From NCBI RefSeq assembly GCF_902652985.1, contig NC_047020.1:36704001-36768000 (forward strand): a DNA stretch of 64,000 bases, written 5' to 3'. The notes below the pieces were generated by a model, which saw only the letters and a list, made by a program, of their open reading frames with translations, did not search any database and was not told the DNA's origin. The DNA is from Pecten maximus. Lineage: Eukaryota. The position numbers and the translations under genes were made by a program. Shown here piece after piece: positions 1 to 18,061 of this stretch; positions within the stretch are counted from its first letter, which is position 1, and each line of letters begins with the position of its first letter.

Positions 1-2
1 TT

Positions 3-713
3 GTATTCGGTTGGAAATCTGTAGGATATTTCCCTATAAGGTTGTCTCTTCCTTTTGTGGAAAGTTGCATGTTTGGGAAACACACAGCAGATCTCAAAAC
101 GGAGTTTTTAAAAACATTACCAAAGGCTGACAGTGATGTTCTGAAAGGCTCAATGTCCAATTTCCAAGCAGTTTCGTTAGATGACCTGACGGATGTCCTC
201 GACACACATGATGTTAAGACAATTCCGAACCCAGGAAACATTGAACGCCTTGTGAGTGAGATCGCACACAAGGAACTTATTCAAGCTGGCATGTTTATTA
301 TCAACTGTTGGCATCCAGTGATGAAGCATATGAAGATGATCACTCATGAACGGTTGGTAATCATGTATGACCAACTGGTCCCATCACCAAGACGCGTGGC
401 GCAGCTATTTAAATTCCCGGAACACATGGCTCAGGAAGAGTTAACCACCGCAAACCACATGAAGCGCTTTGTCAGGGAACTAGATCACGGCAACCTCGGG
501 AACTTTCTACGATTCTGTACAGGATCAGACATTCTCTTATGCAAACACATACAAGTCAATTTCGTAGTCAATGAAGGTCTCGGGAGGCGACCAGTAGCAC
601 ACACATGTTCCTGTATGTTGGAATTGCCAAAAAAATACGAGTCATATCCTGTTTTCAGATCAGAATTCCTAACGATTCTGAAAGCTGGTGTTTGGGTAAT
701 GGACATAATATAA
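3..713 (+). CDS. HECT-domain E3 ubiquitin ligase (G2E3-like), C-terminal part; 5'-truncated by window edge
   Basis: Frame is open from position 3 (VFGWKSVGYFPIRLSLPF...). HECT C-lobe motifs FLRFCTGSD and RRPVAHTCSCMLELPKKYESY..F..EF, with the catalytic Cys in AHTC. Stop at 711-713; AATAAA at 1504-1509. Confidence 0.85.
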   Translation, partial: VFGWKSVGYFPIRLSLPFVESCMFGKHTADLKTEFLKTLPKADSDVLKGSMSNFQAVSLDDLTDVLDTHDVKTIPNPGNIERLVSEIAHKELIQAGMFIINCWHPVMKHMKMITHERLVIMYDQLVPSPRRVAQLFKFPEHMAQEELTTANHMKRFVRELDHGNLGNFLRFCTGSDILLCKHIQVNFVVNEGLGRRPVAHTCSCMLELPKKYESYPVFRSEFLTILKAGVWVMDII

Positions 714-1625
714 ACAAATACTCATACTTACATTGTGTACCAATATCTAGCTATTTTCAGCGGGGCTTATGTCATTGCCCTGGTATTCCTTAGCTATCAG
801 TGATATTCATGTTCAATGGTGTTAATGACATCTTTAAAATATATACCGTCGAATTGGCACAATTTGTATCATATAGTTTCACATCTAATGGTACATGTCG
901 TCACAAAAGAGTGCTGGATTTTGCATAGAACATCTTTGAGACCCAGTACTATAGTTTTTAAAATGACATGTACTTTTTTTTTTTAATTTAGTAGGGAACA
1001 GATGGTTCTCATAATATCTGTCGTGTTTAGTTCGTGTTCTTTAAAAACGATTGATAGTTAGTCCCGCGAATTTTAAATTTGAATATAACATTGCAATATG
1101 TGAGTTAGTGATACACATAACATGCATGGCAAATGCTTTCATAATCGTATGCCAATTATCTTAAGCATCTTATTAATCTTTTTATAGGTATTACACTGTT
1201 CATTTAAAACTTCTGGTTGAGCCACAATAAGCAGTGGTTAAAAACAATTGGATAAAATGGACTGTCAACGGTTCCTAATCGGTGACCTGTACATGCTTCT
1301 ATAGACTTGTCGTTATTGATTAAAAGCTAACTATATCATTTGTCTATGTCTTCTTATCTGTTTCAATCCTCATACTTTGTCAAAACATTTGGCCAAGCAC
1401 AAAATGAACATATTTCGATACACAAATCCCGCATACATCTGTTTGTGCAGTATGGAATGTATACACAATTCAATAATATAATGTCACGACCAGCATTTGT
1501 GAGAATAAAATCTATTGCATAGCACAATGATACGAGTACAAGATTCTATTTACCACAGGATAAAAGCGATGATCTCAATGTATTTCCCTATATTTAAGTC
1601 ACTTGCTCAGTTTAGCTTCGCTGAG

Positions 1626-2359
1626 TACGGAAGCGTATAGTGACCCCCCGAAACCAACTTATAAATGATTAAATATTAGTTTGTTATGACGTATGACCTA
1701 CTTAAAAGTTGTCTTCACGACTTTTATATAATTTTTAATCACACTAGCGACTGAAATGAAGCTTCTATATCATGATCTCGTTTTCATTACATCAGTTAAG
1801 TTGTCATGTGACATAATTTGTGTCAATTTTGTGACTACCGAATTTCCGACAGAAAAATCATTATCGTATCACAATATTCATCAAATAACCCGGTTTGACA
1901 ACTTGTAGAGTAATATCACGTTAAAACGGCTTAACCATTTAATTAAACCAAATGCTATGTTACAAAAATGGCTGTCAGACTCCAGTCGTTTTAACTTGAT
2001 AATATTACTCAACAGGTCGTCAAACCGAGTCATACGTTTTCGTAGTTACGTATTTGATAAATATTTTGATACAATTACGACTTTTATATTTAAACTATCA
2101 TTTACGAGTTCTTTTTTTCTCGTTATCGCGATAATGAAATACAAAATTGTAAGGTTATCACGAAATTGACATAAGTTATGTCACATAACAACTGAACTGA
2201 TGTAATGAAAACGAGATCATACTATAGAAGCTTCATGTAAGTCGCTAGTGTGATATATAAAAGTTGCGAAGACAACTTTTAAGTAGGTTGTAGGACATAC
2301 TAAGCTACTATTAAACCATTAATAAGTTGGTTTCATCGGGGTCACCACACGCTTCCGTA
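1626..2359. mobile_element. Non-autonomous foldback/MITE with long imperfect TIRs, IS3EU-type ends
   Basis: Starts TACGGAAGCGTATAGTGACCCC and ends GGGGTCACCACACGCTTCCGTA. Arms ~1626-1838 and ~2153-2359 are reverse complements. A second inner arm pair lies at ~1890-1931 and ~1984-2029. No TSD (GCTGAG vs CATATG). Confidence 0.8.
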
Positions 2360-2568
2360 CATATGGATGGAAAGTCGTGTATTATCCTCTATTTTCATAA
2401 TGTGTTGACTGCTTAAACCTAATAAGTATTTCAAACGTCATAATAAAAGAAAAGAGATCAGACGAAGACAGCGTCACTAGATACAGTATATTTATTAGAT
2501 ATCAGACATAAACGTGTAGCTACATTATGTTAGTACATGTAGATATGTCGTCAAGCTGATGTATTCAT

Positions 2569-2895
2569 TTACAACAGTGATTTTATTATATTTCTCAAAT
2601 TGTAATAAAGCTCCTTTTCTTGAGTAGGACATGTCGGCATGTGACACCTGTTTACGTCCATTATGTTCTGAGATAGTTCATAGACATCCTCATCACATGT
2701 ATATGTCCCTTTTGGCGTTGTCTCTTCTTCACAAATCTGTATACCCATTGCATCGACAGGACAGGTTCTGTCCTCCACATCATACATTTCTGGCATGGTA
2801 TACATAGTCACCGGACGGGAGCCTCCACGACACGGACCTTGGGCTGTGCGTATTTTGTGGGAGTTCCATGTTGCTACAAATTCATCTAGTTCTTC
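2569..2895 (-). pseudogene. Transposase exon 2 (C-terminal: EELDEFVATWNSHKIR...LYYNLRNIIKSLL*)
   Basis: Preceded on - strand by the acceptor TTTTTTTTGTCAG|GAA (phase 0). The ELD...WNSHxIR...P..MY motif is the usual continuation of this integrase-core family. PolyA signal on - strand at 2491-2496. Confidence 0.75.
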
Positions 2896-3369
2896 CTGAC
2901 AAAAAAAAATCATCATATGATAGCATGTTCCTTACATTTCTGACATGGTAACAATTCAAATGCTGCAACTGTATTTGATTTCGTTTTATTTTAAAATTCT
3001 GACTACCACCTTTTCATAGTTTTTGCTTAACAGGCATGACTGCAATAACGTTCACTATTTACCGAATGAATAATAAATCGTATCTGGGTGAAAAAACGTT
3101 CAGGTGACAAATCCGTAATAAATTAACGTTGGACTGAACCACCAAACAATATCTTAAAAAGAATCGGAATTGGGCATCGGCATAGGTGATTTATACTAAC
3201 AATGCTGATGAATCTTAGCCTATTTACTTTTTACTTCAGCGGATTCGGGATACACGAAAGTGCACCTAACATTTCTGGTATTAAACTGTTTGTATGATTA
3301 TGGTTGTCATCAGATGTCTTATTTTCTTATAGAGATAACTCTCAGAAATAGATATTTACATAAAATATC

Positions 3370-4194
3370 TCAGTTATAGAGAAATATATCTCTGGAAATA
3401 GAGAAATCCAGGAAATCTCCACAAAACATTGCGTTTTCATCATCGGTTAAAGATCTGAACAATTTCATCCAAAATTGACATGTTTGTTTCCTCAACATCC
3501 CCCATAACCACTCAATTCTTTGATTGTTTGTGCTTTTTCCGTATAGAAAACTTTTATTTCCAGCAAGTTCGTCGTCATGGTTTTGTCTAAGAAATATTTG
3601 CATTTGTTCAACATGTCCGTTTTCGGTCCCCATATCTGCACGTACTCTCTGTGGACACCCTTGTATTTGTTTTACTGCTTTTATGAAGTAGCTGGCTATA
3701 ACTTTTGGATCGTTGTTTGTCTTGTAGGCCTCCATCCAAATAATTTTGCGTGAGAAACCATCTATGCAACCATGAATTGAAATGCCGTAAGGTTTAAGTT
3801 TGTCATAACCGTCTATATGCCAGACGTAGTTAGGACCTTTGCTGAAGTATGTCCGTCGTCGTAGCCTCCGTCTTTTCCTAGCAGCTATCCCAGTACTATC
3901 CAATACGTGTAAAAGTGCCAATACCGTATCTCTTGGTATATTGAACCCATGTTGTAAACATTTCTGATGCATCCATCTGTATCCATGGTGAAAATTCGAT
4001 GCCATAACAAATAGTGCAACGTCCAATATGTCCGAGTGGTTTTTCCTTCTCGACAAATGTTGCTGTCGTAAGATCCTTTTCAATGTCGATCTACTAATAA
4101 CACAGCCAGACGAAATCGCCAATGACGACAATATTTCATCATTACTGAATCCCAGGTAAAAGCAACATTTCACAATGTCGGTAACAACTGCCAT
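3370..4194 (-). pseudogene. IS3EU-like DDE transposase (integrase core) exon 1, probably disabled at its 3' end
   Basis: ATG at 4194 (MAVVTDIV...). N-terminal HTH-like segment (ISRSTLKRIL), then GYRWMH, RRRLRRRTYFSKGPNYVWHIDGYDKLKPYG..IHGCIDGFSRKIIW, RVRADMGTEN and STNNQRIE, giving the D-D-E triad. After GDFLD the frame runs into low-complexity sequence and stops, with no phase-0 GT donor. Confidence 0.85.
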
Positions 4195-4277
4195 TCCGTA
4201 GTGTTGTATTACATAAGCTCCGGTTTCATGATGGAGCACACTGTTACATGTAATGCAAGACACTTTAATATATGTAT

Positions 4278-4684
4278 AAACGAGAAATAATCTCGTTATG
4301 ACGAGAAATAATCTCGTATATACGAGAAATTAACTCGTATATACGAGAAATAATCTCGTTATTACGAGAAATAATCTCGTATATACGAGAAATAAACTCG
4401 TTATTACGAGAAAGAAACTCGTATATACGAGAAATAATCTCGTTATTACGAGAAATAAACTCGTATATACGAGAAATAATCTCGTATATACGAGAAATAA
4501 TCTCGTATATACGAGAAATAATCTCGTATATACGAGAAATAAACTCGTATATACGAGAAAGAAACTCGTATATACGAGAAATAATCTCGTATATACGAGA
4601 AATAAACTCGTTTATACGAGAAATAATCTCGTATATACGAGAAAGAAACTCGTATATACGAGAAAGAAACTCGTATATACGAGA
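4278..4684. repeat. Subterminal tandem array, ~19 x 21 bp, each with a 14-bp palindrome CTCGTATATACGAG
   Basis: Unit CTCGT(ATAT/TATT)ACGAG-AAA(TAAT/TAAA/GAAA), read directly from the sequence. Confidence 0.95.
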
Positions 4685-5566
4685 TTTTTTATTTATTTTT
4701 TAATGATACCAACTAAGTCTATTTTTTTCATTGGTCCTATTCGGCTTCCGTATGCTAGGGAGCCCACAGAAGCATCGTTTCTGAAGTGAGTCATGTTGGA
4801 ACAAGCAAAGACAAGTCCGGTAATTCAAGAATTGGGTAATAACTCTAACCCATAATGGCTGTATTTGTTCGCAATGCATAAAACTTCAGGAAACTTAATG
4901 CGGTTAAAAATATCTTTTCGTGCCAAATCGCTCCAACAAATTCGTTTTGTATTCATTGGAGCTATGAAGTGTTCTCGGCGGCTGTTGATCGGACTTCGCT
5001 GGGGGTCCACTTAAGTGGCGATGAAACACCAATCGGTTAGATAACTTGTCTTTTCGAGTAGAATGATCATTTAATTAAATTGAATCGAAACCCAATGGAT
5101 TACGTTTTGGAGATTATTTTCACTTGAAGGAAATAATCGATACCACAATGGACTTCTCGTGTCTTTAATTAAAGGGACAAGAGTCTTTGAATTGGTATTT
5201 CATTTTACTAAATATCGTCAAAAGTACAGATTAACAGTTAAATTTCTATAAAAGCTCATGAAAGCAATTTACAAGCTCAGATTTAGAAATACTGGTATCA
5301 TTGTAAAGGCAATATACAAGTTAAAAACATTTAAGCAATAATTCCGTTCCTTAATGGTGGGATATAGTCAACTATGAATGAAATCCGCGTTCCATTGTTG
5401 TCAGAAATAGGTTTAATCGGGAAACACGCGAACGTTACTTAAGCTCATCACTGCTTACGTTAACATTCCTCTGTTTATGTTGGGTGACCGAGGACAATGT
5501 AGATATCGAGAAACCAAAAGTTAATACGGAAAGTATCAACGAGAGTTGAACCAGGGGTTCCGGAAG

Positions 5567-5770
5567 TTTTTTTGTTTTTTTGTTTAACGTCCTATTTAAG
5601 GACGTGCCAGGTTTGGAGGTGGAGGAAAGCCGGAGTGCCCGGAGAAAAACCACCGGCCTACGGGCAGTACCTGGCAACTGCCCCACGTAGGTTTCGAACT
5701 CGCAACCCAGAGGTGGAGGGCTAGTGATAAGGTGTCAAGACACCTTAACCACTCGGCCACCGCGGCCCCT
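5567..5770 (-). mobile_element. tRNA-derived SINE with V-type central domain, with TSD
   Basis: On the minus strand: GGGCCGCGGTGGCCGAGTGGTTAAG (A box), GAGTTCGAAAC (B box), GGTTTTTCTCCGGGCACTCCGGCTTTCCTCCAC (V-domain-like) and an A-rich tail. 9-bp TSD TTCCGGAAG at 5558-5566 and 5771-5779. Confidence 0.85.
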
Positions 5771-6347
5771 TTCCGGAAGAGTAATCGTCTTCCGCTCTAC
5801 GTTAAATCTGAGCTAAGTGACATTCTCAAACCCAAACTTGAGGTCACGGCAAGAAACTAGTCAAAAATAATCTAGACGAAGAACAACTTTTCGCAAAGAG
5901 TGCTAAACCACTGGAAATGAATTTAACTTCTGCGTAAATGAATATTAGAAGAACAAACCATTGTAGGACTCTGAATTGCTTGGCTGGCGAAAAATATTGA
6001 TATAAAATATCTAACATCTCCATGCAAAAGTCTACTTATTTCTAAATAAATATACGCTTCTTATTCATGCGTTATGTCTGGTCATTGAACCATGACGTAA
6101 TTGATATGCATGATTAAATTAGGTTAGTCCGTCGATTAACAGTAATTAGGTGCAGTAACCTGAGAGAGATATAACGTCCAATATAAACAGATTGTACAGG
6201 TCAGTGGGGTTAAACGTACTTATGCAGAGGACAAACACTTGTTCAAGTATAGTAATGGAAGAGGGTATGCCGAAAAGTACTGCCCGGAATCAAATGTGTT
6301 AAACCCGAAAGGAAAGTCAGGGAGTCTAAATCGGCCAAAACTACATT

Positions 6348-7312
6348 AAACAAGAGTACTGTCGGCGGTACAAAGCTCGCTTACATTGTATATCACTACA
6401 CCTCACACTAGAATGAGGGGCGAGTTCACCATCGGTACAAAGCTCGCTTACATTGTATATCACTACACCTCACACTAGAATGAGGGGCGAGTTCACCATC
6501 GGTACAATAAATCACTATACCTCACACTAGGATTAGGGGCCGAGTTCAATATCACTACACCTCACACTAGAATGAGGGGCGAGTTCACCATCGGTACAAA
6601 GCTCACTTACATTAAATCAATATACCTCATACTAGGATTAGGAGGTGAGTTCACCATCGGTACAAAGAATAATGGGGTAATTTCACCGTTGGTACAAAGC
6701 TCGCCTCATATTGTATATCATTATATCTAACACTAGAATGAGGGATGGGTTCATTATCGGTACAAAGCTAGATTTACATTGTATATCACTATTTCACCAA
6801 CTGGAATCTATATTGCAATATATTTATACCAATATTTTAACAAAAACAAATTGCAATATTTGAGGTAAAACTGACATAGTTAAAATTAGGTTTTGAATTG
6901 TAGAAAACAATAAAATTATTACGATTTTGAAACATATTTGTCACCAAAAATTAATAGATAACATTCATAGCAACCCTGATGCCAGATATTATTACCCTAG
7001 TACAATCATAAAGGAGCTAACTGATGCCTTTCAACAATTTCATCAAAACTTAACATTAGATTTGACTTACGTCCAAAAAGTTTTAAACAAAATCAGGGTT
7101 TTCCCAAAAAAATATTCATTTTTACTCCGGATAGTAATACTTAACCCCATGGCAACACTAAAACCAAATATTGGAACCCTAGTTCACATATAAAGGAGTT
7201 TACTCTAATGCCGTTCAACACGTGCAACAGAACCTTAACATTTAGAAACCAATACCGACGCCGACGCCGGAGTGACCACATACGCCCCTCCTCTCTTCAA
7301 GAGGCGAGCTAA
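6348..7312 (-). mobile_element. HINE (non-autonomous Helentron-associated element)
   Basis: One end is AAACAAGAG plus the short stem GTACTGTCGGCGGTAC plus subTIR AGCTCGC. The other end is a (GACGCC)n microsatellite plus GAGGCGAGCTAA (inverted subTIR). This layout is typical of bivalve HINE/pearl-like elements. Confidence 0.6.
6366..6795. repeat. 67-bp tandem repeat (2 clean plus several decayed or partial copies)
   Basis: Unit CGGTACAAAGCTCGCTTACATTGTATATCACTACACCTCACACTAGAATGAGGGGCGAGTTCACCAT starts at 6366 and 6433; the next unit start is at 6500. Confidence 0.9.
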
Positions 7313-10271
7313 TTATAGAAGGAAGTATCCCCTAATGTGATAGTTACCTACATGATATCATTGTATATTGGATAATTTTGGAAGTCAAGCAATATAAATA
7401 TATTTGGGTTCAACATATCTAAAGTATTAAAAGGAGAAGACGCTATGATCCAAGCGGGATTTAAATATTAATTTCACTCTCTGTGCTTGAAGAACCGACG
7501 GAGATGATGACATTTTAATTAGACTTTCTGGATCAACTCAACGAGGATGAGATGAAGAACGGGTGAGCATTCTGAGCAAACAAATAAGTTACTTCTTAAC
7601 TAGGTTGTTATCCACCGAACAACACCTAGATAAACTCATTAAATTCCCTCAAATCTAATGTCAAAGCACATTGCAGCGCGAAACGAGAACCCAGAGGCGT
7701 GTGTGTCTGTATCTAAGCGACAAATACACAACATCGAAGAACATGTTAGAAATCCCATAGGGGGGTCTTTTTTTATTCATACTTGCTCTCCTCTCTTTCA
7801 CTGAAGCGCCCTGGATTATTAAAATCTTTTACATCATTCGTTAAATACCAAAAAAACAAAAACACATTTTCTCAGCAACACCCATATACTTCTTTGCATT
7901 GTCGAGATATTAATTTATTTGCAACTCTCCGTCAAAACAGTTGATTGATATAAGCATTTGCAAAGTACATAAAGACGTTCACTTCTTTTCTGTTGAGGAT
8001 TTGACTGAAATAAACTAGCATCATCACCCGTATGTAAGCCATTCTGAGATTCCATGCTAAGAAATCACTCCCGGAAGCATTATGGAAGATTGGGGGTTTA
8101 ATCAGAGGCCAAGATTCTAAAGAACAAAACCTAGAATAAATTGGATGATCTTAATGACCTGTCGACATGACTCATCATGACGAAATATACTATAAAAGTA
8201 GAGATAATTTGTAAACGTATAATTCCATATTTACGACGGTTATTTAAGTAGCCACTTGATTGTAATGAACGGTGTGCGTGTGTGCGAAATTTACACTTGT
8301 TATATGGAATAAATATATTGAAGGTTATATCCTTGAGTCTGTGTTCATTTACTATACTTAATGGTTATCAAATTATAAGACCCCATTCCCAGTGGGCCCG
8401 AGATCAACGAACCTAGGTTAGGTCTCTTGGATAGAAACCGCTCCCTTTAACAATACAATGTACAAACAAACAGCATATGACTTGGTTGTTTGAAGAGCGA
8501 ACTGGAAACAATAGTGTATACAGCTACCGAATTTTATTGTTTTTATTCATTTTTCATATCCATTAATCTCAAAAAGATGTATCATTATCGATGAATTTTT
8601 ATTACAATTTGTATTTATCGGTCTTATCATTTTACTGCATGTAAGTGTATGGAATGTTCATTACAAATTGACGGTACGTATCCTGCAATCTCGCACGATA
8701 CCTAACAAACTGTGAATCTTGGCTGCAATATAACTGCATTAGCTCTTCCCGCTTATATAGACGATCGGGACACTGTATAGACAGTGTGTACCTTAACACT
8801 TTTCGATTTGTATGGAAAGTGAAAAGATGACAGTTTGTACCCTACAATAATTCATATTTTAACAGAAAACAATATCAAGACATACCTGTATTACCCTGTA
8901 TTTCGGCTATGATACAAGTATGCTTGACATGAAATGTGATCGCATATTCCCTATAATTATTCATAATTCACATTAAAAATATCTTTGGATATCAGCAAAT
9001 TTAGTGTAGAACATCAACCTATTGGTCTTTTTCAGTATTCTATGTTTATGGAATATTACGCAAAATAATAGCATATACCCTTCAATTATTCATATATCCT
9101 GAGTAAATAATCTCGCAAGGTACAGTAAATGTACAAATCACAGGTAGTCTTATTTTAGCGCTGAAAGCCTTCCGCAAAATCATGATCGCGTTAATTAAAA
9201 TTTCTTATATCTTTCCCAAGGTAACTACTATAAGTACGTCTCATTAATGCGCTGATGCGTTTGAATTCAGTTTTGCGCTAAACATTTGAGTACGCGAAAA
9301 TAAGCATGTACACGAAAATAAGCATATTTACAGTATCTTACAATATGAACCTGTTGACTCTTTCCGCTTCTCAATAGGACATTAGAAAGTGATATCATGC
9401 ACTCCTCAATGGGTCGTCTGAAGTAATGTGTCTGAGTGTGGTCAATGGTGATACGTCTTATGTCCAGACGATGACCTGAGTGGAGGCGAATCAATAGCAG
9501 ACGAGTTGTAATATCCCCTCCGCAGCTGTTAAGACATTTACCAAAATAAACAAATGCTTATTCCAAAAGTAATGCTTGTATGCTATCTACAGATATCCGC
9601 ACAGCGAAACAATATAATATGAACATAAATAGGCCAAAACGTCCCACATTAGTGGTGAGATTTCAAGAAAACGTACTGAAATTTGATAATAATTTCGTCG
9701 ACTGTAATTGACCCTGAATAAGTTTTTGCAATGAGTGAATGAAAAATAATACAACTCGTGATATCAATACAGAAAAAAACTAGTTGAATTGATTTTTTTA
9801 TCCGTTTTTACATCTTAAATTTTTCATCTTCAGCGTGATTGCTATGGGAGTCATAGTTCACTTTTAAATCAGCGTTCCTTAATTGAACTTTGACAGCCTG
9901 TCTCTTTCATGTCAATCAAATAAAGGTTTTGATTGACTGGGATCGCTAAGGGACCTATAGAGAGCAGATCACTATATTCGTTAAAGTGCAAATCAAAAAT
10001 TGATTCTTGGGAGAAAACAGTTTACATTATCACAGGTCTTGTCTGTCTATAATAGATGTTTGGAATTTGTTTCCAATGCCAATATTTAACTCATTTTAAA
10101 GATTTCCCCAATACTTGACTTAACATAAGTGATTTGACTTAACACCAGCGTCAAACTTTTGCAGCTTGAAAATCAAGTATTTATACATTTTGTCAAATCA
10201 ATTGATATCAGTAAACATGATTTTTTTTTTGTACAAAAGACAGACACATCAACAGTATATTTTAATAGATA

Positions 10272-13400: not shown

Positions 13401-14601
13401 TGCAAGATTATACAGGCTTTTAAATTTATAGTGAAAAAAAAACTGTAAAAAAACCTGAATAATAAAATAATATGTTTGACTTTATTCTAGTTGAATTTTA
13501 AAAGGCTACCTGGCAGAATACAACAGAATAAGATTGATGTCAACAAATGTAAATTATCATATAAATAATTTGTTTACCGTCCTCTATACAGATTAAACAT
13601 GGAAACAAAGGACATGGCAGTTTAGATACGTAATTTGTCACGACAGGTATAAATAAATATGCATGTACATGTATTCTTTTACATTTGTATTAAATGGCCA
13701 AAATGATAAACAATGCAACGGTATTATATTTTGTTAAGGTCCTCTTTCCATATTAAAAATCTGAACATGTCATAGCCTAGCATTCGATAAACCTGATACA
13801 ACAAGGCCATATGAGAGAAGGAACGACGGAAATAACTAAAATCTGTGGAAAACAAGTATATGTGACCACTATGGTGAAATGATTTGTATTCTTCAAATCA
13901 ATTTATTAAATAATGTTTTCTTTCCGGACCGTGTGGTATCGCGCCATATCATCGACGTCCTGACGTCATGTCATGTGACGTCAAATATTTGCGTCCATCT
14001 TATACATTTGGAGAAAACATCTTTATCAATTCACAGATACACAATTTACAACATTTTTGTATTTAATAAAATTGAAATACTCACATGGGTATGACATGCA
14101 ATTTTGTTCATCGTTTGCCAATATGCAGATAGGCAAAGCTATACCCTTTATAAGTAAACACAATATGCAGTGTATACGGTGTTGTTGTGAATATACGAGT
14201 TTCGTGTTTAACAAACGACTAGCAAATCAAGGTCGTGATGAAAACTGGTGTGCATGCAAGAAAACTAAAATTAAAAAAGAAACCATATATCCAAACTGCT
14301 GTCACTAGGATTCCCTATGCTCTAACCTCCATAATCCAAAGCCAAACGAAATCCTACGATTCTACTAGATGTTCTACATGTGCTGCTCGCGATATCATCC
14401 TTTGGGATATGGCAAGCCTATTACTTCATCCTTACTGTAAGACAAAGCTTACCTGAATGTGTTTGTAGATGGTAGTTACATGTGCAGGGACTCTTTTATG
14501 GTCTAAATTTTGTACATAAAAACTCTATATGAAGATATATTACCAAGCATCGCGTTTTACTATTACAAATTTTATTTGTTTTTAGTTGTTTAGGATCTTC
14601 G

Positions 14602-16862
14602 CAACAGCTAGGGTCATATGAGGATGGGTGGCTAGGGGAACACCAACAGCTAGGGTCATATGAGGATGGGTGGCTAGGGGAACACCAACAGCTAGGGTCA
14701 TATGAGGATGGGTGGCTAGGGGAACACCAACAGCTAGGGTCATATGAGGATGGGTGGCTAGGGGAACACCAACAGTCAAGGTCATATGAGGATGGGTGGC
14801 TAGGGGAACACCAACAGTCAGGGGTATATAAGGACAGGTGGCTAGAGGAACACCAACAGTCAGGGTCATATGAGGATGGGTGGCTAGGGGAACACCAACA
14901 GTCAGGGTCATATGAGGATGGGTGGCTAGGGGAACACCAACAGTCAAGGTCATATGAGGACAGGTGGCTAGAGGAACACCAACAGTCAGAGTCATATGAG
15001 GACAGGTGGCTAGAGGTACACCAACTGTCAGGGTCATATGAGGACAGGTGGCTAGAGGTACACCAACAGTCAGGGTCATATGAGGACAGGTGGCTAGAGG
15101 AACACCAACAGTCAGGGTCATATGAGGACAGGTGGCTAGAGGAACGCCAACAGTCAGGGTCATATGAGGACAGGTGGCTAGAGGAACACCAACTGTCAGG
15201 GTCATATGAGGACGGGTGGCAAGGGGAACACAACTGTCAGGGTCATATGAGGACAGGCGGCTAGGGGAACACCAACAGTCAGAGTCATATGAGGACAGGT
15301 GGCTAGGGGAACACCAACAGTCAGGGTTATATGAGGACAGGTGGCTAGAGGAACACCAACAGTCAGGGTTATATGAGGATGGGTGTCAAGGGAACACCAA
15401 CAGTCAGGGTCATATGAGGATGGGTGACAAGGGGAACACCAACAGTCAGGGTTATATGAGGACGGGCGGCAAGGGGAACAACAACAGTCAGGGTTATATG
15501 AGGACGGGTGGCTAGGGGGACACCAACAGTCAGGGTCATATGAGGACAGGTGGCTAGAGGAACACCAACCGTCAGGGTTATATGAGGACGGGTGGCAAGG
15601 GGAACACCAACAGTCAGGGTTATATGAGGACAGGTGGCTAGAAGTACACCAACTGTCAGGGTTATATGAGGACGGGTGGCTAGAGGAACACCAACTGTCA
15701 GGGTTATATGAGGACGGGTGGCTAGAGGAACACCAACAGTCAGGGTCATATGAGGACAGGTGGCTAGAGGAACACCAACAGTCAGGGTCATATGAGGACG
15801 GGTGGCTAGAGGAACACCAACTGTCAGGGTCATATGAGGACGGGTGGCTAGAGGAACACCAACTGTCAGGGTTATATGAGGACGGGTGGCTACAGGAACA
15901 CCAACAGTCAGGGTCATATGAGGATGGGTGGCTAGGGGAACACCAACAGTCAGGGTCATATGAGGACAGGTGGCTAGGGGAACACCAACAGTCAGGGTCA
16001 TATGAGGACGGATGGCAAGGGGGACACCAACAGTCAGGGTTATATGAGGACGGGTGGCAAGGGGAACACCATCAGTCAGGGTCATATGAGGATGGGTGGC
16101 TAGGGGAACACCAACAGTCAGGGTCATATGAGGATGGGTGGCTAGAGGAACACCAACAGTCAGGGTCATATGAGGACGGGTGGCTAGAGGAACACCAACA
16201 GTCAGAGTCATATGAGGACATGTGGCTAGAGGAACACCAACAGTCAGGGTCATATGAGGACGGGTGGCTAGAGGTACACCAACCGTCAGGGGTATATGAG
16301 GATGGGTGGCTAGGGGAACACCAACAGTCAGGGTCATATGAGGATGGGTGGCTAGGGGAACACCAACAGTCAGGGTTATATGAGGACAGGTGGCTAGGGG
16401 AACACCAACAGTCAGGGTTATATGAGGACCGGTGGCAAGGGGAACACCAACATTCAGAGTCATATGATGATGGGTGACAAGGGGGGCACCAACAGTCAGG
16501 GGTATATGAGGACAGGTGGCTAGAGGAACACCAACAGTCAGGGTCATATGAGGACGGGTGACAAGGGGAACACCAACAGCCAGGGTCATATGATGATGGG
16601 TGACAAGGGGGCACCAACAGCCAGGGTCATATGAGGATGGGTGACAAGGGGAACACCAGCAGTCACGGTCATATGAGGATGGTCGACAAGGGGAACACCA
16701 ACAGTCAGGGTCATATAAGGACGAATGACAAGGGGAACACCAACAGCCGGGGTAATATGAGGACGAGCGACAAGGGGAACACCAACAGTCATGGTCATAT
16801 GAGGATGGGTGACAAGGGGGACACAAACAGTCAGGGTCATATGAGGATGGGTGACAAGGGGG
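14602..16862. repeat. 42-bp minisatellite, ~54 copies
   Basis: Unit GGGTCATATGAGGA(T/C)(G/A)GGTGGCTAG(G/A)GGAACACCAACAGTCA; it accounts for all the repetitive ORFs in 14.5-17 kb. Confidence 0.97.
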
Positions 16863-18061
16863 TCCGTAATTTGAAATACTTTATTAACAAAACTGTTCCC
16901 CAATGGAAAACAAAGGTTCTCCCTGTTTATATTGGGGGATATCCCCATGCGCCTATTATCAAAGATAATTGGAGAATGTTAGTTTTTTATGCCGAAATCG
17001 CGAAATGTAACTTTCACGAAAACAACCGGACTTGCAGTAGCTACATTCTTGTTTACCGAGCAGTCAGTGCCTTTAAAATAATAAGTGTATGTTCCTGCGA
17101 TAAATGATTTGCGTTCACATCAGATAAACCCATTAACTTATTGTTAGATTGGTCTAACGCAATGCAATAAAAGAAAAGACGAATTTTTTTGGGGGAAAAT
17201 CACTATCGCCTGAGAAATGGTAAACCTGAAACACCGGCAGAGTCGTCAATGAAGTAAATGCTATCATTTTCAGAAGACAAAGCATTATGACCTTAAACTA
17301 TACTTTTTACCAGTATTCGTCTACTTTTTCTTGCCATCAGTCCTTTCTCTAGGTTCACACTTTGATGACTGGCATAGATAACATAAAACAGCCGTTTCAA
17401 TTCTTTATGGATTCGCTCTGATATAAAACAGAGCTACACAACGAATCGTTTCTCACATCAGACTTGTAAAATTTACGTCTTTGTAAGACAAAACCTGCCA
17501 TAGACCTGGTACACTGAAGCGAGAATTTTAATACAAGGCCTCGTAGCAAATCAACCTTTTTAAAATGAATTTGTCTATTAGTTTTACCTACTCCGAGGTA
17601 TCGGCTTAAAAAACTCTAGAGAGCTGTACATGGTAATTATGAGGGCTCCGTTGGTATTTCATCTTCGCTTCCTGTTGTGGGCTTAGCATATCGATTTTAA
17701 CTTTCAATTTGGACATTATGTTTCAGGAAAATTGTATTATTTCTATTTTAATTATCCTAACACCTCGAGGGGATTTAATTATACAATAATGTGAAAAAAT
17801 ATACGTCAAATAACAAAATATATTCCTGCAATGACCAGGAAAAAGAGATTGGCTGAGTAGATGCCATTATCTTCATCCTCTAGACACCTGAACCCCGTCC
17901 CTGCTTCCTGATTCTACAGTATCACAATTGGATTCTCCAGACAAGGAGGCCGATAACACGAGCACGTGACAGGTTTTATTTCCTTCCTCCTGGGTTCCGT
18001 GTATTTCCTTTATCTTACTTTAACATAAAGTATACCTCTGGAAATAATTGAAGTGAAATAT

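Follow-up and report, generated by a model that had tools for sequence, protein, structure and literature searches.

A Pecten maximus transposon of the IS3EU/GingerRoot kind that probably carries its own HECT ubiquitin ligase gene

Results

The DNA analysed here, referred to as the window, is a stretch of 64,000 nucleotides of the scallop Pecten maximus (C6:36704001-36768000, in a genome of 918 Mb). Its first 4752 bases hold the right-hand third of a DNA transposon with two convergent genes, one for a predicted HECT-type ubiquitin ligase and the other for an integrase-like DDE transposase (Table 1). An earlier note, made from the letters of the window alone, had described a HECT open reading frame with the catalytic AHTC motif, converging on an IS3-like transposase, with an AATAAA signal of each gene facing the middle and a TAY..RTA-type terminus closing the unit. 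All of these features were located as claimed: the HECT frame is present at the very start of the window on the plus strand, the signals at 1504 (+) and 2491 (-) both point toward the middle, and the terminus runs up to the TGCTAG flank. The HECT frame matches the Pfam HECT domain (E 2.4e-6, 27.9 bits, cut-off 23.9) and includes RRPVAHTCSCMLELP.

Table 1. Features of the right-hand part of the element (window positions)
Feature	Position	Strand	Basis or remarks
HECT exon 2, last 237 codons and stop (C-lobe, catalytic Cys in AHTC)	1..713	+	Pfam HECT
HECT 3' untranslated region	714..1510	+	AATAAA at 1504
Palindromic spacer	1626..2358	.	ends TACGGAAGCG ... CGCTTCCGTA, arms 1650-1839 / 2153-2334, no target site duplication
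Transposase exon 2, C-terminal 109 codons and stop	2569..2898	-	tblastn with full-length relatives; acceptor ...ttgtcag, then GAAGAACTAG
Transposase intron remnant	2899..3406	-	5' part and splice donor gone in the C6 copy
Transposase exon 1	3407..4194	-	ATG 4194-4192; HTH region and DDE core (WHIDGYD, CIDGFSR, GTEN)
Right subterminal array	4274..4684	.	19.6 copies of 21-bp unit GTATATACGAGAAATAATCTC, short palindrome in each
Right terminal inverted repeat	4649..4752	.	104/104 match to left end; closes ...GGCTTCCGTA at 4752
Target site duplication TGCTAG	4753..4758	.	same 6 bp at C6:36695024-36695029, before left end

The note had also predicted a left end outside the window, with an inverted 21-bp array and a matching target site duplication (TSD), and such an end exists. 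A DNA search of the genome found the array and terminus again at C6:36695030-36695487, in reverse orientation. The left terminus lies at C6:36695030, 8,970 bp upstream of the window, and opens TACGGAAGCC; the junction reads ...atcgTGCTAG, then TACGGAAGCCGAATAGGACC..., with the array next. This left array (C6:36695098-36695550) mirrors the right one, and the first 104 bases of the element are the reverse complement of the last 104, without a single mismatch between the two terminal inverted repeats (TIRs). The whole element spans C6:36695030-36708752 (13,723 bp). Because the predicted left end was found, with 104 of 104 terminal bases and the same 6-bp flank, the observation is not due to chance. 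Moreover, as the left and right ends with their common TSD enclose the HECT gene, this gene lies inside the element. The subterminal arrays are presumed to be binding sites of the transposase.

Both genes are also found together within ends at other places. The C18 element is 13.5 kb long, with ends TACGAAAGCCGGTTGGGACC and TSD ATTTTG/ATTTTG, and the C3 element 9.6 kb, with ends TACGGAAGCGTATTAGGGCC and flanks GATATA/GGATAT. A Joint Genome Institute (JGI) metagenome contig, L023, holds a 7.7-kb element (20-7731) with ends TACGAAAGCCGAATGG, TSD ATATTG/ATATTG and 21-bp arrays at both ends; here exon 1 stands just inside the array and the HECT gene (+) converges on the transposase gene (-). The terminal arrays of the C18, C3 and L023 elements are built from other unit sequences. 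A single family has copies on C3, C10 and C1, with both genes present and 1-8% divergence, and fragments of array plus terminus (82-94% identity) occur at dozens of places in the genome. No ends were found in the DNA examined around the C10a and C3959 copies. Two related JGI samples (Ga0224511 / Ga0224510), one of them the source of L023, yielded four more contigs (L024-L027) whose HECT proteins are 84-88% identical to the L023 protein, which indicates that the source organism of L023 has a multi-copy HECT family.

By its sequence, the element has the hallmarks of the IS3EU/GingerRoot kind, namely its termini, a 6-bp TSD, a DDE transposase and two proteins. The ends are of the TA..TA type (TAYGG..CCRTA) with TIRs longer than 30 bp, reading TACGGAAGCC...GGCTTCCGTA in the C6 element, TACGAAAGCC in C18 and L023, and TACGGAAGCG in C3. 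The duplication measures six bases and is exact in C6 (TGCTAG/TGCTAG), C18 and L023, and the flanks of the C3 copy are one base off a 6-bp duplication. The transposase matches the integrase core families rva_4 (E 9e-29) and rve (E 1.5e-4) of Pfam. Upstream of the DDE core there are only HTH-type matches and no N-terminal HHCC zinc finger; the alignment to P0130 begins at residue 1. The transposase and the HECT protein are both encoded within the ends.

The co-occurrence and convergent orientation foreseen for the two genes hold genome-wide. A transposase match lies within 20 kb of 16 of the 34 HECT loci, always in convergent orientation (16/16), at a chance expectation of pairing of about 1.6% (at most 362 transposase candidates in 918 Mb). 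Two findings had been named in advance as fatal to the proposal. A left end between the two genes was seen in no family examined, nor does the HECT frame, enclosed by ends and multi-copy, form the final exon of a host gene present once in the genome.

The HECT gene starts outside the window and has two exons. Position, splice signals and motif similarity suggest that exon 1 of the C6 gene is at C6:36695665-36695736 (ATG...CAGAAG followed by gtaagt; MTEDSFYDYVDSLGVASDILRDQK), about 100 bp inside the left array. Exon 2 begins at C6:36702926 (tttcag followed by ATTGACC) with IDQYVIQLMSEEEMKKYIPLHGDR. The remark that the frame has no introns is correct for its visible part, but the gene has an intron of about 7.2 kb upstream of the window. 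The splice between exons 1 and 2 is based on the NCBI model of a C18 paralogue, P0006, on splice signals and on motif similarity. Residues 1-29 of P0006 map 57 bp inside the left array of its element, and residues 28-633 map 5.8 kb further on. NCBI's own model was also the spliced HECT protein used for searches, with no exons joined by hand. Intron 1 of the C6 gene houses a nested repeat of about 2.4 kb (C6:36698944-36701371; L001:4944-7371), with dozens of genome copies at 87-93% identity.

The copy in the window had been taken as intact, and in this respect the earlier note was wrong. The HECT frame is broken by a frameshift at about C6:36703103-36703153, some 850-900 bp upstream of window base 1, and the SAM-like part of exon 2 is in a different frame from the remaining 536 codons. 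An 'intron' of 24 nucleotides was considered as the cause of this frame change and ruled out, being far too short. The transposase gene, compared with the C15 copy (L038:389-588), lacks 200 bp at window 3406/3407, a loss that strips exon 1 of its final 13 codons (KCLIQFCFTEIIQ) and also removes the splice donor; the frame of exon 1 reads through the deletion to a stop at 3370-3372. With defects in both genes, the C6 copy must have depended on the enzymes of another copy for its movement.

Outside C6, the DNA of window 1-1600 has a single match, on C816, where a 98.3% identical copy has both lesions and CATATG as its right flank instead. The same two lesions next to a different flank indicate that the defective version has moved at least once, in trans. 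That C816 is a haplotig of the C6 locus was ruled out, because the right flank differs. Shorter deletion derivatives on C12 and C2 retain the exon 1 region beside the element's terminal arrays; the stretch examined around the C12 derivative does not extend to its other end. A scattered third copy of the C6 family lies at C8:42799110-42829768, with 97-99% identity in intron 1 and around exon 1. This copy has the nested repeat, neither HECT exon 2 nor the transposase finds a match in it, and the orientation of the array and terminus nearby is unfit for one simple element.

The right arm of the palindromic spacer between the genes (2089-2547) recurs in deletion derivatives elsewhere and abuts the arrays in many short ones. 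The spacer may represent a miniature element nested in the larger one, or else an internal hairpin favouring deletions. The hexamer CATATG follows the internal CGCTTCCGTA (window 2359-2364) and also flanks the C816 copy (C816:7034-7039), which may be a coincidence or a hint of rearrangement.

The encoded protein has about 630 residues, with a SAM-like head, a ubiquitin-like beta-grasp and a complete HECT domain. We modelled the structure of P0006 with AlphaFold2 from 69 relatives (predicted local distance difference test, pLDDT, 84), and the model has the two-lobed HECT fold. Foldseek returned 102 matches in the PDB at E <= 0.001, and all 45 of those listed are HECT-domain entries; the best, HUWE1 (6xz1_A), has E 1e-11 and probability 1.00 over 385 alignment columns (residues ~300-630). 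The catalytic cysteine of the C-lobe, C599 of 633, stands 34 residues from the C-terminus and, together with 26 other columns, is invariant in the 69 relatives, 67 of which match Pfam HECT (best E 5e-9). Residues ~115-220 form the beta-grasp, whose best match is the Polycomb ULD/RAWUL domain 5fr6_A (Z 9.6, root-mean-square deviation 2.4, 80 residues). Ordinary ubiquitin-like domains come next at Z about 8, so that the Polycomb flavour is only a lead. A SAM identity of the N-terminal five-helix part is weakly supported, by a Pfam SAM_3 match below cut-off (E 0.0012) and by an Atlas cluster whose members are partly SAM_1/SAM_2. The earlier note's remark that many 'G2E3-like' annotations in molluscs would be transposon genes found no support. 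PHD-type or zf-HC5HC2H fingers had no Pfam match in any of the 69 relatives, and membership of G2E3 was ruled out because its N-terminal fingers are absent. The G2E3 cluster of the Atlas (PHD_G2E3, zf-HC5HC2H) aligns only at TM 0.45, and the relatives are named 'uncharacterized' or 'HECT domain-containing'.

The histories of the two genes agree, as had been anticipated. The distance matrices of HECT and transposase are correlated (Spearman 0.58, Mantel p = 0.0002), and all supported clades of the maximum-likelihood trees are common to both (C3a+C10b+C1, C3959+C17b, C18+C17a and the C6/L023/C18 group). As deep nodes are unresolved in both trees, this agreement amounts to no supported conflict. 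The ratio of nonsynonymous to synonymous substitution rates (dN/dS) is below 1 for the HECT frame, as also expected: it ranges from 0.29 to 0.56 for HECT and from 0.27 to 0.43 for the transposase, on small counts and within families only, since dS is saturated between families. HECT evolves faster than the transposase (amino-acid distance 0.5-0.7 vs 0.36-0.5), which fits a host-directed role and proves nothing.

Transcripts of both genes were sought in Logan contigs. HECT exon 2 and the 3' untranslated region (L022:1180-3329) are represented in contigs of three studies, which reach window 1213-1329; small indels in these contigs relative to C6 indicate that they come from other, partly decayed copies. 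The stretch between the two genes yielded no contig. In one contig of run X1, transposase exons 1 and 2 are joined exactly at the acceptor (joint at window 2899), with the intron skipped, and its exon 1 has 36 nucleotides found only in the C15 copy among the loci examined. The exon join and these 36 nucleotides, missing in C6, identify it as the spliced mRNA of a copy with intact exon 1. The type of the runs was guessed as RNA, and it is the spliced X1 contig alone that demonstrates RNA.

A word search yielded 190 relatives of the HECT protein at E <= 0.001, most of those listed being 590-720 residues long and many of them multi-copy. Their hosts include Pinctada, Crassostrea, Mactra, Dreissena, Ptychodera, many teleosts, Xenopus, other frogs and Tribolium. 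The transposase has relatives in other species of most of the same animal groups, and both genes are represented in bivalves, teleosts, frog, beetles and acorn worms. Linkage across species is based on the one metagenome contig, on contigs of equal length and on one neighbouring pair of locus tags. Four pairs of HECT and transposase matches stand on contigs of equal length (38,123, 245,806, 8,845 and 1,281,550 bp), and the pair in Sarotherodon has locus tags three apart (ACER0C_024914 and _024917); as signs of linkage, these lengths and tags are pointers, not proof. A scan of genome contigs with the 'Thiodiazotropha MAG' protein P0001 gave no match.

Some loci hold only one of the two genes in the DNA examined. 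At C2:35748618-35750460 (L012/L013) there is a 551-residue HECT open frame with one TGA and an element terminus beside the expected position of exon 1, and contig C2318 (L014:943-2922) has a 660-residue HECT open frame. A sister family of the transposase (C3:52512086-52512856 and at least 10 other places; L019:5918-7273) has an intronless frame of 452 residues, 43% identical, with HTH_21 and rva_4. No TACGR ends were found in 20 kb around the copy of this family that was examined, and the 1112-residue open reading frame beside it is a LINE reverse transcriptase.

Two further repeats of the window lie beyond the element. At 14499-16880, long overlapping frames on both strands correspond to a tandem cysteine-rich peptide-like repeat (…HPSSYDPDCWCSPS…), unrelated to the transposon. 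Tandem repeats of 67, 52 and 40 bp with a common core (ATCACTACACCTCACACTAGAATGAGGGGCGAGTTCA) occupy 6366-6587.

Discussion

In this study, we followed a HECT frame at the edge of the window to both ends of the element around it. Our results make it likely that window 1-4752 is part of a young cut-and-paste transposon of the IS3EU/GingerRoot kind, which has its own HECT ligase gene as a stable component of the lineage. The location of the gene within the ends of three families of the scallop and of a metagenome element, its movement together with the transposase gene, and purifying selection show that it is a stable part of the transposon lineage and not a recent capture.

Several observations weigh against this conclusion. 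The C6 copy itself has a frameshifted HECT gene and a truncated transposase. About half of the HECT loci are without a transposase match within 20 kb. Good HECT copies, at C2:35748618 and on contig C2318, stand without a transposase in the flanking DNA examined; these may be deletion derivatives, or ligase genes becoming retained by the host. The sister family of the transposase is present in at least 11 near-identical copies, and it shows no HECT gene in the 20 kb around the one copy examined. The splice between HECT exons 1 and 2 is unseen in reads for the C6 family, as the contigs stop short of the start of exon 2. Finally, Pfam HECT scores of 24-31 bits are marginal relative to the cut-off of 23.9, and a score barely over the cut-off implies that the HECT sequence is very divergent.

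We propose that the transposase would bind the palindromic 21-bp units, whose sequence is specific to each family, cut at the TA ends and insert the element with a 6-bp stagger, in the manner described for IS3EU. Each gene has a single intron, starts just inside an array and faces inward. The predicted ligase would load ubiquitin from a host E2 enzyme onto its cysteine, and the SAM-like and ubiquitin-like modules would choose its target. On what this target may be, we tentatively favour a host protein involved in limiting transposition or in silencing the element over the transposase itself, a preference held at somewhat less than even confidence. It is drawn by analogy with viral E3 ligases and with the accessory enzymes that other transposons encode, for instance fungal TET/JBP (PMC12730594).

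Alternatively, the ligase may act on its own transposase, either restraining its level or stripping it off the DNA once strand transfer is over, which would let host repair proceed. Stripping has a parallel in the unfoldases that dismantle other transpososomes. Co-regulation is likely for the two genes, which are paired and convergent and have arrays of one kind next to their starts; their trees also agree, as expected of partners that need to recognise each other. However, physical linkage by itself would make the trees agree, and SAM-like and RAWUL-like modules are found more typically in chromatin-bound host complexes than in an enzyme paired with one dedicated substrate. On balance, we regard the transposase as a possible target, and a less probable one than a host protein.

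The host-directed role that we favour could also take a more specific form, in which the ligase is an anti-silencing weapon against chromatin repressors: its modules would dock on silencing complexes at the element, of the Polycomb type or built on other SAM polymers, and ubiquitination by the HECT domain would mark these for removal. We consider this version unlikely. If true, a family that is among the most widespread of the 'uncharacterised HECT proteins' in fish, frogs, molluscs, beetles and hemichordates would be mobile counter-defence.

It is slightly harder still to believe that the HECT gene is a passenger without a role in transposition, whether an old linked capture or a catalytically inactive scaffold. 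Precedents come from fungi, where TET/JBP genes ride passively in other DNA transposons and where the second gene of IS3EU is a different one, an alpha-kinase (PMC12730594); the sister transposase family, without a HECT gene at the copy examined, points the same way. Against a passenger stand the position, orientation, intron position and domain order, all kept across families 50-70% apart in protein and across phyla, a dN/dS well below 1, and the invariance of the catalytic cysteine and 26 further columns in the 69 relatives. Lastly, that the HECT frame is a host gene beside a transposon, or is flanked by independent ends by chance, is already refuted: the unique DNA match of window 1-1600 to C816 would by itself suggest a single-copy gene, but C816 is a second insertion with another flank, a matching TSD and 104-bp perfect ends enclose the frame, the C12 and C2 deletion derivatives keep the exon 1 region by the element's arrays, and the same layout recurs in other families and another organism.

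With a fixed, selected ubiquitin ligase in a cut-and-paste transposon, the ubiquitin system would join the toolkit of animal mobile DNA, of which proteases, kinases, helicases and dioxygenases are known examples. It would also give a function-level name, HECT ligase, to the unnamed second protein of animal IS3EU elements. The multi-copy 'uncharacterized' or 'HECT domain-containing' proteins of roughly 600-700 residues in teleosts, amphibians, bivalves and beetles are probably transposon genes, and such proteins should not be counted as expansions of host E3 ligases. For experimental work, natural copies with open reading frames exist and the catalytic cysteine is obvious.

The predicted ligase resembles the cellular HECT E3s (HUWE1, the NEDD4 family, E6AP and UBR5) in its two-lobed fold of about 330 residues and in a cysteine 34 residues from the C-terminus. 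Unlike them, it shares only 12-17% identity with these enzymes, has no C2/WW, RCC1 or PHD-type fingers, and is transposon-encoded and multi-copy. Parasites that bring or recruit a ubiquitin ligase against host restriction include herpesviruses with ICP0, human papillomavirus with E6 and E6AP, and Salmonella with SopA. The transposon ligase would share with these viral and bacterial systems the idea of a parasite equipped with a ligase, an analogy that serves only as a lead.

IS3EU has been in Repbase since 2012-2013 and is described with TA..TA termini, TAYGG..CCRTA, and a 6-bp TSD (PMC10045372, PMC12730594). It is said to encode 'only two proteins' (PMC8232023) and was first reported from zebrafish, beetle and acorn worm (PMC11934779). 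The scallop element is like animal IS3EU/GingerRoot (PMC6839031; Kojima and Bao 2023, PMC10045372) in having an integrase-like DDE transposase without an HHCC finger, ends that read TACGG..CCGTA here, a 6-bp duplication, long TIRs and two proteins, and its host range overlaps the taxa in which IS3EU was first reported (PMC11934779). It differs from IS3EU as described in open papers in that the second animal protein goes unnamed in their descriptions, whereas in the scallop this protein is a predicted ligase of SAM-like/ubiquitin-like/HECT make-up. The relevant passages of those descriptions likewise mention neither long arrays of 21-bp units near the ends nor splicing of both genes. The open-access literature on IS3EU/GingerRoot, to the extent that its text was available, contained no link between IS3EU and HECT, and its co-mentions of 'ubiquitin' look unrelated by title and abstract. 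The curators of Repbase may well know the second IS3EU protein.

The closest parallel is found in fungal IS3EU, in which an alpha-kinase gene, and sometimes a TET/JBP dioxygenase gene, is described opposite the transposase (Kojima 2025, PMC12730594). Fungal and scallop elements have in common TAYGG..CCRTA ends, the 6-bp TSD, and a second gene opposite the transposase that encodes an enzyme possibly acting on host regulation. The accessory enzyme is a kinase or dioxygenase in the fungi and a predicted ubiquitin ligase in the scallop. Moreover, TET/JBP genes are reported to shift between superfamilies (PMC12730594), whereas the scallop HECT gene tracks its transposase.

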